A stretch of 63,539 nt of DNA, counting the filler, from Octopus bimaculoides (Eukaryota), in NCBI RefSeq assembly GCF_001194135.2. It is 6 parts of 6 records of this genome, joined end to end, with 100 filler letters (N's around TTAATTAATTAA, not from the genome) between each part and the next. Parts side by side here need not be neighbours in the genome. Positions count along the whole stretch, not along the records: positions 1 to 17,004 come from NC_069007.1; 5 more parts are not named here. One strand, given 5' to 3'. The translations under genes and the position numbers were made by a program. The notes beneath the pieces are model-generated. The model worked only from the letters and a program-made list of their open reading frames with translations. It was not told where the DNA came from and did no database searches. Shown here in pieces: positions 10,404 through 17,004 of the stretch (position 1 is the stretch's first letter; each line of letters begins with the position of its first letter).

Positions 10404-10517
10404 ATGGTTGCTTCTATTGTCATTGATAATGGATCATATACATGTAAAGCTGGTTTTGGAGGTGAATATGAAGACAGAGAAGTGTTTCTTTCAGTTGTTA
10501 GTCATCCTAGAAACAAG
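10404..10517 (+). CDS. Divergent actin-like gene, coding exon 1
   Basis: Translates [38 protein letters not shown], collinear with the actin N-terminus ([34 protein letters not shown]). Ends AAG|GTATGT, phase 0, at the conserved actin codon 41/42 intron position. Candidate 3' splice site TTTTTGCCAAG| at 10373 just upstream of the ATG. Frame not shown in the ORF track. Confidence 0.9.
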
Positions 10518-11116
10518 GTATGTTGACTTCATGTACATATATTACAATGAAAAATGTGGGCATATGCATGTTAATATTCTTAAGTTATTACACCTGGAAA
10601 AGTACAGAACAGGATTTCTAAAGTAGAATTCACCTAAATTCCTCTAATTTCCTCTAAAGGAAACTAAAAAGTACTTAAAGCTAAAATTCTATTGTACTTA
10701 AAATATTGCAGCTGAGAATGACTTTTTAAAATTTACTATATTTTATTAAGACAAAAATTATAATAGCATTACTGGTTTTTTCCAAAAATAAGCCCATCTG
10801 ATTTTAAGCTTATGGGTTTATATTCAGAAATTCATTATATGCAAAAATATTCAGTACTAAAAAAGTATTGTGTTAAAAACTGGCGAAAAAAGGAAATTAA
10901 CATCTGAAATCAAGTACAGAAATCCTATGCTAATTATATTAAAAAAACTTTTTAAAACTATTGGGGGCAAATGTGCCAAACCAAAACATTTTGTTTTGTG
11001 TAAAAATTTTGTTTTTGTTTAGTTGATATGATAGAACTCATCAAGATGAGTGCTGTGGTGCTAATCTTTCAAAATATATTCAAAATGAAAAAAGTTATTA
11101 TATAATTTATATAACA

Positions 11117-11361
11117 GGCGCAGGAGTGGCTGTGTGGTAAGTAGCTTGCTTACCAACCACATGGTTCCGGGTTCAGTCCCACTGCGTGGCATCTTGGGCA
11201 AGTGTCTTCTAAGATAGCCTCAGGCCGACCAAAGCCTTGTGAGCGGATTTGGTAGATGGAAACTGAAAGAAGCCCNNNNNNNNNNNNNNNNNNNNNNNNN
11301 NNNNNNNNNNNNNNNNNNNNNNNNNNNNNNNNNNNNNNNNNNNNNNNNNNNNNNNNNNNNN

Positions 11362-11400
<39 letters not shown>

Positions 11401-11628
11401 GTGTGTGTGTATATGTTTCTGTGTCTGTGTTTGTCTCCCCACCATCGCTTGACAACTGATGCTGGTGTGTTTACGTCCCCGTAACTTAGCGGTTCGGCAA
11501 AAGGGACCGATACAATAAGTACTAGGCTTTACAAAGAATAAGTCCTGGGGTCGATTTGCTCGACTAAAGGCAGTGCTCCAGCATGGCCGCAGTCAAATGA
11601 CTGAAACAAGTAAAAGAGTAAAAGAATA
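11117..11628 (+). mobile_element. SINE family A, full length with internal microsatellite/gap (in actin intron)
   Basis: tRNA-like head, core, internal (TA)/(TG) tract, 3' part ending AAATGACTGAAACAAGTAAAAGA. Confidence 0.85.
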
Positions 11629-13679: not shown

Positions 13680-13775
13680 ATTATTATTATTATTCAGGTC
13701 ACTACCTGGAATCGAACTCGGAATCTTGGGGTTAGTAACTTGCACACTTAACCACTATGCCATATGCCTGTGGGC
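13680..13775 (-). mobile_element. Short tRNA-derived SINE with (TAA)n tail
   Basis: Minus strand GGCATAGTGGTTAAG (A box) ... GAGTTCGATTCC (B box), then AATAATAAT. Confidence 0.55.
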
Positions 13776-14369
13776 ATATAATAACACTATTATAATGATA
13801 TTAATATAACTTGATTAATGTCCCTCCACTGGTATATTTGTCTATCCACTTCCTCTCCAACGACGGAATACTCAGCCCATGGAATCCTCATTTCACACTA
13901 AGTTCCAATAACTGGGATATTCTGGAAACAGCTGTTAGAGACTATATATACCTTTATTATATCATACCATTATACAGCTAGATTAAATATCCGTGTCAAG
14001 TCTGGCCAAACTGTTTGCGTCTTCATTTGTTTTAATCTGTAAGTATATACATACAGAGATGTACTTGCATAGCAAGTGACTGGATTTGAGATTGTATACT
14101 GAAACAAAAACAATTGCAGCATGGAAGACGTTTGTAAGCCATTTAAGAGTACACAAAGATTTCCAGAACTTCACTGTCTCTTATTCAAGAGTATCCTCTT
14201 TGATACTTATACATCTGTTCATTTTTCAATTCATTTTTTGTAGACTTTGCTGACAAAATTTTACACCATTAGGCTTCCACATCTTTAGCACATGATAATT
14301 TGCTCTGTTGGGAGAAATTTATTTTCATCTGCTAGCTTATTATGCCAGTCACCAAGAGGTAACTGTTTG

Positions 14370-15350
14370 ATGTGAATGTTGTTCGTGTGTCTATTTTAAC
14401 TTTGTGTTGTGATATGAGTGCAGCTTCTATGATTAATATTCTTTTATGTGAGGAATTTTATTGATTGTGCGAGCATTATCTTTCATAATTTTTCTAAGTA
14501 TGTTTTGTAGTGTTTTATATAGAATTATGCTGTAAATGCATAGTGAGCCATCAAGAAAGTGTTGTTCAAGTATGTCCAAAGATGTGAAGTCCTGAAGGTG
14601 GTCATTAATAGTTTGGGTTTACATACTTGTGACTAAGATTTGTGGCTTTGGGTTCATATTGTATATTATTAATTTTAGTTTATGGTCCCTTGTGATGCAT
14701 TTTGTGTTGTGTTTTATAAAGCTTTTGATTATGCATTCATCTGTTTGTTACTTATGCATTTGATTTTTATAATAAATTTTATGTTTGATTTGTGTATGTT
14801 CATTGGATGTATTCTTTGATGTATTTGTTACTATTCTTCTCTACCTCAGTCTACTACTCTCTTGGAATAGACATTGTGAATTTCTTTCTCTTGTGCCTCA
14901 TTTGTGGACAAGAACCTAAATGTACTTAAAGATATTGATTTTACAACTGACATAGTTTGTCTGGACATTCACCCTTTCCATGTAGGTATACGTATTTGTT
15001 AGATTCTTTTCTGTTTACAGAGGTCATGTATCTTCTCATTTCAATTTGTATGTTTTCCAATGAGCTTGAAATTTTGAAAGTTAAACTTTAGTACTGAATT
15101 TATTTCTAACTTTTCTTTTAGTTTCTGACAATACTTTAATGTATCCATTATCACTACTATATCATCTACTTAGCTAGTATATCATCTAAATATACAATGT
15201 ATTTATGTTTTTGGTATTATTCTGTTCTCTCTAGTGGATAGGTAGAATGCTGCAAACACCAGTCCTAAGGGGGAACCCATGGTTACTCCATCTTCTTTGT
15301 TTAAATTATATTGTAAGCAGCATAAATATACTCCAGTTGTACACATCATC
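14370..15350 (-). mobile_element. Penelope-like element (RT + GIY-YIG) remnant, antisense in actin intron
   Basis: Minus strand: DGVTMGSPLGLVFAAFYLSTRENRI, (Y)LDDI/VDDIVV, KLKLIIY, ILIIEAALI; many stops. Confidence 0.7.
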
Positions 15351-16063
15351 ACTAGTATTTTTTTATAGGTTTGTTGTTATAACAGCTGTCTTCATATTTT
15401 TCAGTGCTTAAAAAAAATTCTATCAATATTTGCCTGTGAAATCATTGTTTTTCTCTTCTCAGATCTTAAATAAATTGTATATTTTATATCCTTAATTTAA
15501 AAAAATATTGGTTTCTAAAATTAGCAGAAGACTCAATTTTTAGAGAGGAGGAACTAAATTAAATCACTTCACATCTTGGTATTTCCTTTTTATTGAACTC
15601 AGAGATGTAAAATGCACACTTGAATTTTGGTGTAATTTGAACTCAGAACATATAGGTTCATGACTAATTACCATTTTGACTGATGCTGTTATATACTTGT
15701 GATAACTATTGTGAGATTTAATGCTCTAGATACAGTTTCAGTTACCCAAGAAATATCGGTTTTCAAATTTTGGCACTAAGCTAGCAATTCTTAAGGGGGG
15801 GGGGGGTAAATCAATTTACATTGAATGCAGTATGCAACTGGTATCTATTTTATCGACCCCGAAAAGATGAAAGGCAAAGTCGACCTTGGTGGAATTTGAA
15901 TTCAGAACACAAGAACACTCTTATTTTAAATGTTTAACAGATAGATATTATAGGGATAATTACCAAAATCCTAAAATTTATCTAATTCTTTCAATAATTG
16001 CTAATATGTCAAAATCTTTAACTCAAATTTCCATGAATCTTATCGTTATTTATTGCATTTCAG

Positions 16064-17004
16064 GCTGGAATGGAAGACAATTGCCACTATATTGGAAATC
16101 AAACTGTACGTCNNNNNNNNNNNNNNNNNNNNNNNNNNNNNNNNNNNNNNNNNNNNNNNNNNNNNNNNNNNNNNNNNNNNNNNNNNNNNNNNNNNNNNNN
16201 NNNNNNNNNNNNNNNNNNNNNNNNNNNNNNNNNNNNNNNNNNNNNNNNNNNNNNNNNNNNNNNNNNNNNNNNNNNNNNNNNNNNNNNNNNNNNNNNNNNN
16301 NNNNNNNNNNNNNNNNNNNNNNNNNNNNNNNNNNNNNNNNNNNGCAGTAATGTTGGCTAATCAAGCTGCTTTGTCCCTCTTTGATTCTGGCCGTGTGACG
16401 GGTATCTCTGTGAATGTAGGCCATGGTATCACCCAAGTTGTCCCTGTCTATGAAGCTTCAACTATAACAGAAGCTACTGTCCATCAGAATACTGCTGGTC
16501 TTGACTTGAGAGATTACCTTAGAAGGATCTTGACTGAACGTGGCTACATGTATGGTGACTCAGTGTCAGGGAACAAAATATTAGATGACATCAAAGAGGA
16601 GCTCTGCTATGTTGCTCTAAACTTTGAACAGGAAATGGAGGCTGCAGCCTCTTCTTCGGCTTTGGAAAGGGGATATATATTGCCTGATAAACAAGAGATC
16701 ACCATTGGCAACGAACGATTTCGAGTCCCAGAAGCTATGTTCCAGCCAGGTTATATTGGTAAGGATGTTGCTGTTCATGAAATGACTTTTAACTCAATCA
16801 TGAAATGTGATGAGAAAATCCGGAAAGACCTTTTTGCCAACATTGTGTTGTCCGGTGGTTCAACAATGTTCCCAGGTTTTGCTGAACGTATGCAAAAGGA
16901 AATCAGTGCCTTGGCTCCACCTGACACAGAGATTAATATCATTGCTCTACCAGAACGTGAATACTCTCCATGGATTGGTGGTTCTAGATTGGCTAGTAAG
17001 CCTC
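16064..17004 (+). CDS. Divergent actin-like gene, coding exon 2 (internal gap 16113-16343; 3' end lost in gap after 17004)
   Basis: Acceptor TTATTGCATTTCAG| then [16 protein letters not shown] (actin 45-60). After the gap, 220 uninterrupted codons [17 protein letters not shown]...CYVAL.FEQEM...ITIGNERFR...[11 protein letters not shown]...WIGGS align to actin 131-350 (about 134/220 identities to beta-actin by hand count). The frame change across the N run is explained by the estimated gap size. Confidence 0.95.

Follow-up and report, generated by a model that had tools for sequence, protein, structure and literature searches.

A divergent actin-like gene of Octopus bimaculoides, which we call copy A, lies at positions 10404–17004 of the window, the whole 63,539-nucleotide stretch that was analysed (RefSeq assembly GCF_001194135.2; positions 1–17,004 come from NC_069007.1). 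Copy A is one member of a tandem and inverted cluster of two-exon, actin-derived paralogs. We lean towards the interpretation that it belongs to an Octopus-restricted, fast-evolving family derived from actin, whose proteins would keep the actin fold and act as non-conventional, hydrolysis-deficient subunits or regulators. The odds that copy A itself is still alive are about even; it has no visible lesion, and its lineage is without detectable constraint. Actin is among the most conserved proteins known, and a family in which nearly half of the residues have changed and the frames are still open amounts to a natural test of which regions of the actin fold are dispensable. The site of adenosine triphosphate (ATP) hydrolysis has been rewired alike in every member.

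A tblastn search with human beta-actin as the query found three actin-like stretches in the window, two of which make up copy A. Positions 16344–16997 on the plus strand match actin residues 131–348 with 61% identity over 219 amino acids (E 2e-84), and positions 10407–10517, on the same strand, match residues 5–41 with 51% identity. The Pfam Actin profile (PF00022) recognises 16344–17003 (E 5.7e-60) and the first exon of copy A (E 7.7e-08), and a moderate-confidence model of an O. vulgaris relative has an actin fold, placing both in the actin superfamily. Only actins were among the top matches when copy A was searched against the PDB sequences (approximately 267–277 bits).

Exon 1 of copy A (10404–10517, plus strand) comprises 38 codons followed by the donor AAG/gtatgttgac; its end, AAC AAG/gtatgt, is conserved as a donor in all exon-1 copies compared. 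Because the ungapped alignment of this exon ends with its last codon at actin Q41, the intron falls at actin codon 41/42, in phase 0. Intron 1 (10518–16063) is 5.5 kb long and contains interspersed repeats and an assembly gap, and a block within it (14207–14765) is collinear with O. vulgaris introns at approximately 70% identity. The acceptor of exon 2, tgcatttcag/GCT at 16064, is homologous to the acceptor in four paralogous copies, and together with the first codons of the exon it is homologous to copy B, the downstream tandem neighbour, and to the O. vulgaris gene. The 5' end of exon 2 (16064–16112) encodes 16 residues of a shortened, hypervariable D-loop region. Its 3' part (16344–17004) has 220 open codons, without a stop from 16344 to 17003, which correspond to actin residues 131–350, include a rebuilt phosphate loop of 10 residues, and reach the edge of the piece. 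Translation, tblastn and Pfam thus bear out what the initial annotation had read from the sequence alone, namely an open frame with good splice sites, an intron at codon 41/42 and no stop in 220 codons. Upstream of the start codon, approximately 100 nt (10300–10403, plus strand) can be aligned among five exon-1 copies from two species and may represent a conserved 5' flank or 5' untranslated region; over the wider upstream region the species share only about 70% identity. A bacterial-type promoter scan of the copy A 5' flank, uninformative for a eukaryote, scored no better than shuffled sequence.

A conventional actin gene of molluscs is laid out in the same way. In the Babylonia areolata actin gene (P0012), which encodes the same fold and carries the same GGSTMFPG and SSSALE states, exon 1 ends ...RPRHQ/gt, a 9-kb intron follows between Q41 and G42 in phase 0, and one exon encodes the rest. 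Copy A likewise has a single coding intron at codon 41/42, as do all family members tested, each with two coding exons, and the suggestion that it had kept an ancestral actin exon structure is consistent with this two-coding-exon gastropod layout. A processed retrogene was considered and rejected, since the parental intron is retained (5.5 kb in copy A) with conserved splice sites. We give almost no credence to the related proposal that a conventional actin has been distorted by errors of sequencing or assembly; the region is rich in gaps and repeats, but the derived residues are shared by three species whose genomes were assembled independently. Conventional metazoan actins are typically more than 90% identical to each other. 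We rejected conventional actin on identity, as copy A reaches 61–63% (219 amino acids) and full-length relatives 52–54%; the former value agrees with the approximately 60% from which a highly divergent paralog had been proposed.

The identities also bear on membership of a described Arp subfamily (Arp1/centractin, Arp2, Arp3 or a nuclear Arp). Identity of Arp1 to actin spans a range that covers the 52–61% seen between the family and actin, which by itself would allow an Arp. Direct comparison places the family nearer to actin. Against human Arp1, for which the values are approximate, the C-terminal half of copy A is 43% identical (61–63% to actin), full-length O. vulgaris P0002 is 38% (52–54% to actin), and P0170, a member of a second subfamily, is 40% (51% to actin). 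Conventional actins were the best matches in every search, the family proteins are 369–374 amino acids long with no large Arp-type insertions, the molluscan actin states GGSTMFPG and SSSALE are retained, and a profile search found no family member outside Octopus. We therefore rejected Arp1, Arp2 and Arp3 as assignments, the direct comparison being with Arp1 (38–43% against 52–63% for actin), and regard a described Arp subfamily as very improbable. The initial annotation had likewise placed the C-terminal half closer to conventional actin than to Arp1, Arp2 or Arp3, and had named clustering with a described Arp or actin-like subfamily as one outcome that would speak against its reading; the identities favour actin. 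The conventional type of gene layout and the actin-like identities together indicate that the family descends from a conventional molluscan actin gene by duplication at the DNA level, and is neither a retrocopy nor a canonical Arp. Its two subfamilies have in common 15 fixed derived residues, including S155V, D157H, V159I and H161Q, indicating that they had one origin and then diverged rapidly.

The changes that set the family apart from conventional molluscan actin, to which it is 52–63% identical, are concentrated on functional elements. The second phosphate loop reads SV(N/D/S)VGHGITQ in every member, compared with V(M/L)DSGDGVTH in conventional actin. G15, in the first phosphate loop, is replaced by Y or H in every member (Y in copy A), D154 is mostly N, D157H and H161Q occur in all members, and K336 has become E or D in most of them; Q137, K18, K213, E214 and G302 are kept. 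Copy A retains Q137 but does not otherwise have a canonical pocket, as it combines G15Y, D154N, D157H and H161Q. According to PMC9646518, D154 and H161 of filamentous actin hold the network of waters through which the attacking water is activated, and no ATPase activity can be measured in the triple mutant Q137A/D154A/H161A. Given this role and the replacement of these residues, ATP hydrolysis by the family proteins is predicted to be weak or absent, and their binding of nucleotide may be abnormal.

The N-terminus and the elements that make contacts in the filament are also changed. The N-terminus of copy A, MVASIV, has no acidic run, the D-loop is shortened, hypervariable and different in every copy, and the hydrophobic plug (actin residues 262–274, window approximately 16740–16780) is altered in copy A, so that none of the three elements has its conventional form there. 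Copies A and B of O. bimaculoides have the plug, whereas all O. vulgaris and O. sinensis genes of subfamily 1 have a 6-residue deletion in it. The C-terminus of subfamily 1 is changed and extended by eight residues. Judging from these elements, formation of canonical filaments by family members seems unlikely.

To quantify the evolutionary pressures on these sequences, we estimated the ratio of non-synonymous to synonymous substitution rates (dN/dS) by four methods, which were in agreement. Conventional actins are nearly invariant; in contrast, values across the octopus family ranged from 0.5 to 1.3, with one pair higher still. The C-terminal 215 codons of copy A gave 0.53–0.68 against O. vulgaris and O. 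sinensis (dS approximately 0.2; Fisher p 0.01–0.07), subfamily 1 against subfamily 2 gave 0.8–0.95 (dS 0.40–0.52), the subfamily-2 pair P0301 (O. bimaculoides) and P0284 (O. vulgaris) gave 1.0–1.3, and O. vulgaris P0002 against O. sinensis P0124 gave 1.1–2.1. Several frames of 358–374 codons are nevertheless intact across the three species, and in a simulation that did not count indels, a frame of 374 codons remained stop-free by chance with P of approximately 0.0008 at the inter-subfamily distance (d = 0.23). Conservation along the protein is clumped (p = 0.005). The family thus combines fast protein evolution with frames retained across species, and the data fit selection on the open frame, with residues under relaxed or diversifying selection. 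Divergence also differs between coding and non-coding DNA. For exon 2 (16344–17003), K is approximately 0.13 and dS 0.14–0.22, while non-coding DNA (window 9941–10403 and 14207–14765) has a K of 0.28–0.38 between copies and species; because dS lies below the non-coding divergence, gene conversion of exons between copies is likely.

We propose that a conventional molluscan actin gene was duplicated at the DNA level with its layout kept (codons 1–41, a long intron and one remaining exon), and that a tandem and inverted cluster arose from it, with birth and death of copies and probably with exon gene conversion. The encoded proteins would keep the actin fold without being working conventional actins. 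In them the proton relay for ATP hydrolysis has lost its residues (D154N, H161Q), both phosphate loops are altered by D157H and G15Y, K336 has become E, no acidic N-terminus is present, and the D-loop and plug, on which filament contacts depend, are hypervariable or deleted. Family members would then most likely serve in some specialised cell type as hydrolysis-deficient, actin-like subunits or regulators, with actin itself or its partners as binding targets. Selection would keep the frames of the family open over the long term, and amino acids would change at a nearly neutral rate.

Several observations weigh against this interpretation. At the level of the family, a dN/dS near 1 equally fits widespread relaxed constraint, the predicted loss of ATPase activity and polymerisation is read from residue identities, and the databases contain no transcript-derived family protein, all members coming from genome annotation. 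The AlphaFold2 model of O. vulgaris P0002 (built on a 32-sequence alignment) has a mean predicted local distance difference test score of 65.5 and a predicted template modelling (TM) score of 0.67; given this moderate confidence, it was used for the class of fold only, and not for pocket geometry. Its top 50 Foldseek matches were all actin (TM 0.75–0.78). At the level of copy A, the gene is altered at positions otherwise invariant in the family (K215E, D222N and the VGYP motif that closes exon 1), and approximately 100 of its approximately 370 codons, about a quarter, lie in two assembly gaps. Since the split from copy B, a pseudogene with 88.5% identity to copy A at the DNA level, the A lineage has accumulated 5 synonymous and 18 non-synonymous changes, compared with 9 and 22 in B, and private amino-acid changes number 17 in A and 18 in B. 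Under neutrality since that split, the 274 visible codons of copy A would be free of stops with P = 0.14–0.33. Taken alone, the copy A lineage has a dN/dS near 1 and looks neutral.

These points are the substance of the most serious competing explanation, in which copy A would be a recently formed pseudogene, or else a duplicate in the course of being lost, and any function would lie with the cluster's other copies; its frame would look open through shortness of time, with a quarter of it hidden in gaps. We regard this explanation as quite possible, if not the one we would choose. It is favoured by the number of private changes, equal to that of the dead copy B, and by the fair chance of a stop-free frame, and dead relatives surround copy A: in copy B the frame is broken by one frameshift, one in-frame stop and a 51-codon deletion, and the inverted exon 1 upstream contains a stop. 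Each of the intact genes in O. vulgaris and O. sinensis has broken copies after it, and the NCBI model at copy A is only a truncated chimera. Three features of copy A are less easily reconciled with decay. The 274 visible codons carry neither a stop nor a frameshift, and the start codon, donor and acceptor are intact; the C-terminal half has a dN/dS of 0.53 against O. vulgaris (Fisher p = 0.01); and the exon is far better conserved than its flanking DNA. An estimate of approximately 0.5 for the A branch, derived from three-taxon pairwise distances, was dropped, as parsimony counts of the changes in each lineage disagreed with it. We did not find that copy A avoids changes at conserved sites better than pseudogene B does, in a comparison where the numbers are small.

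The two gaps limit what can be said of the whole frame. The gaps of the window recur in the chromosome-scale assembly, where the window corresponds with 100% identity to chromosome CM046627.1 (GCA_001194135.2). The gap in exon 2 (16113–16343, plus strand) is 231 N long and hides approximately 63–68 codons, equivalent to actin residues of about 63–130. From 16064 to 16344 there are 280 nt (280 mod 3 = 1), which puts the flanks one base out of frame at the nominal gap length, but the length of 231 N is an estimate only; judged by copy B and by the homologous genes of the other two species, O. vulgaris and O. sinensis, the hidden stretch is predicted to be approximately 190–206 nt. The matching region is one continuous exon in every relative, and continuity of exon 2 across the gap in copy A is therefore plausible. 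In the chromosome-scale assembly a further gap, of 1002 N, directly follows 17004 and hides approximately 30 C-terminal codons. The gap at 11276–11361, which has an interspersed repeat on one side and a TA/TG microsatellite on the other, is within intron 1 and has no effect on the frame. With about 100 of some 370 codons hidden, the initial description of copy A as intact cannot be established from this assembly, and the dN/dS near 1 in its lineage further undermines that description. At the level of the family dN/dS is high and frames are open; the lineage of copy A itself is indistinguishable from pseudogene B. The dN/dS comparison that had been put forward as a check gave 0.53–0.68 against O. 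vulgaris and O. sinensis, and a value near 1 on the copy A lineage.

The family was found only in Octopus among the annotated proteins in the databases searched. The C-terminal half of copy A was compared with 5.8 billion proteins and O. vulgaris P0002 with 1.84 billion cluster representatives, and further searches used the subfamily-2 protein P0170 and a family profile. Members came exclusively from O. bimaculoides, O. vulgaris and O. sinensis, in agreement with the earlier view that the paralog is lineage-specific. In the profile search, single-domain Octopus proteins scored 647–708 bits, followed by 526 bits for the best ordinary actin; entries with higher scores were fused two-domain models.

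Among database proteins, XP_052833092.1 (P0001, 332 amino acids; "actin, cytoplasmic") is alone in being identical to the window. This model begins at the Met in AVMLANQ, continues to ...RLASK, and then crosses into the copy that follows, where it takes in the 5' flank and exon 1 (48 residues). It spans window 16350–17000 to locus L001 16723–19117, and joins the second half of copy A exon 2, the exon 1 of the next copy and a further unrelated exon. As a truncated chimera of two neighbouring copies, it is unsuitable as an actin reference. Its 90% cluster consists of this NCBI model alone, and no read-assembly or transcript-derived protein of copy A was found in the databases. UniProt A0A0L8IG31 is the model of copy B, in which the lesions are hidden in invented introns. 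Elsewhere the family has been annotated automatically at NCBI and UniProt as "actin-like", "actin-3-like" or "actin, cytoplasmic". The suggestion that these genes might be undescribed thus holds for the literature, in which we found no paper that cites the family accessions or describes the family, but not for the databases. A literature search for "Octopus" with "actin-like" returned one skin-mucus proteome paper, which names "actin-like proteins" without identifiers.

The octopus family is a further case of lineage-specific, non-canonical actin-like genes such as those known in Drosophila and mammals; it derives from actin and, among the databases searched, is confined to one lineage, with members in three Octopus species. 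Mammalian ACTL7A/B, ACTRT1-3, ACTL8 and ACTL9 are germline actin-like proteins encoded mostly by dispersed, single-copy genes. They are of independent origin, with a sequence tie to the octopus family only via actin. These proteins likewise have a divergent actin fold, originated in a single animal lineage and fall outside the canonical Arp1-10 (bioRxiv 10.64898/2026.08.21.746286). In Drosophila, D-ActL1-3 and Arp2D of the obscura group, and Arp53D, are likewise lineage-restricted, strongly diverged duplicates of actin or Arp genes, with raised non-synonymous rates and frames kept open across related species (PMC7038667, PMC8291977). These fly paralogs are expressed in the testis and are positively selected according to McDonald-Kreitman tests (PMC7038667, PMC8291977). 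In contrast to the octopus genes, which keep the parental intron, the D-ActL genes of flies have no introns, and Arp2D arose as a retrocopy. The family in octopus also differs from the fly genes in its arrangement, an extensive tandem and inverted cluster in which many copies are dead. Its nearest analogy would be the germline-restricted "orphan" actin-like proteins of flies and mammals, and judging from the genes it stands out by how many copies it has, how they turn over, and how uniformly its catalytic site has been rebuilt. It is conceivable, but in our view rather unlikely, that octopuses evolved on their own a multi-copy family of hydrolysis-deficient actins, whose frames selection keeps open while the residues turn over at approximately the neutral rate; such a pattern would point to genetic conflict or to repeated positive selection, the germline being one possible setting. 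These genes would then be a third origin in animals, independent of those in flies and mammals, of "orphan" germline actin-like proteins, in this case with tandem birth and death of copies and with exon gene conversion. Expression in a specialised tissue, if true, would place cephalopods beside flies and mammals as lineages with actin-like innovations of their own.

Some of the same pocket substitutions occur in unrelated divergent actins of other invertebrates. Littorina "actin CyI-like" (P0007) and Acanthaster "clone 302-like" (P0179) have G15D, to which the latter adds D157H, and Diadema "non-muscle 6.2-like" (P0209) has H161Q, as in the octopus family. These proteins are 43–62% identical to the octopus family, no closer than ordinary actin, and the similarity of their pockets is therefore probably convergent. 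This pattern suggests that the actin ATPase site may have been remodelled recurrently and convergently in invertebrates.

The O. bimaculoides cluster covers at least 75 kb and contains at least five copies. Copy A, pseudogene B, P0321 and P0301 lie at 9.806–9.881 Mb of CM046627.1. Copy B has its exon 1 at L001 16753-16866 and its exon 2 at L001 21147-22017 (CM046627.1 approximately 9826168–9831432), and further downstream are "actin, cytoplasmic 2-like" P0321 (9.841–9.848 Mb) and "actin-3" P0301 (9.874–9.881 Mb). The two subfamilies, annotated automatically as "actin-like" and "actin-3-like", are 48% identical to each other. The third actin-like stretch found by tblastn (3428–3306, minus strand; 41% identity to actin 1–41, with one in-frame stop) is the exon 1 of an inverted subfamily-2 copy, head-to-head with copy A. 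It retains the donor CAG/gtatgtt, has TAA in place of the codon for Ser14, and shares 61% identity with the first exon of O. sinensis "actin-3-like" P0170, compared with 41–49% with other copies. The supposition that an inverted copy at 3.3 kb was part of a divergent-actin cluster was therefore sound. The corresponding loci are at 12.60–12.875 Mb in O. vulgaris, with models CAI9741788-94 and others on both strands, and at 15.37–15.45 Mb of CM016886.1 in O. sinensis.

In the latter two species, a broken copy of a third type, more actin-like in sequence, is located approximately 9 kb downstream of each intact subfamily-1 gene examined (L002 38508-39453, L003 25277-26145 and L004 43500-44350). 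These copies have frameshifts and a stop at the WIGG motif, and the unit of gene and third-type pseudogene has been duplicated as a block. O. vulgaris has an additional exon-1 copy at L002 17938-18051, between exons 1 and 2 of CAI9741794.1; this copy lacks 5 nt close to its 3' end. In O. sinensis, pairings of exon 1 and exon 2 from neighbouring copies have been annotated as "isoforms X1-X3" of one gene.

Long overlapping open reading frames at 8960–9893 (plus strand) and 2734–3110 (minus strand) appear transposon-like by eye, with no Pfam match even at E <= 1. An interspersed repeat resembling a short interspersed element flanks the intronic gap (11096–11275 and 11362–11632), recurs at window 1–147, and has numerous copies (81–91% identity) at the loci of O. 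vulgaris and O. sinensis; ARAGORN found no tRNA in it (11096–11632). A dispersed repeat at 6475–6658 has inverted copies at L001 17468-17651 (96.7%) and 23334-23514 (92.8%). Tandem sequences include a (CACCAT)16 array at 863–960, a long (AT)n microsatellite at 6657–6774, and a 20-bp minisatellite of approximately 17 copies at 8157–8763, with an assembly gap inside it. Several of the assembly gaps in the window adjoin tandem arrays or microsatellites.

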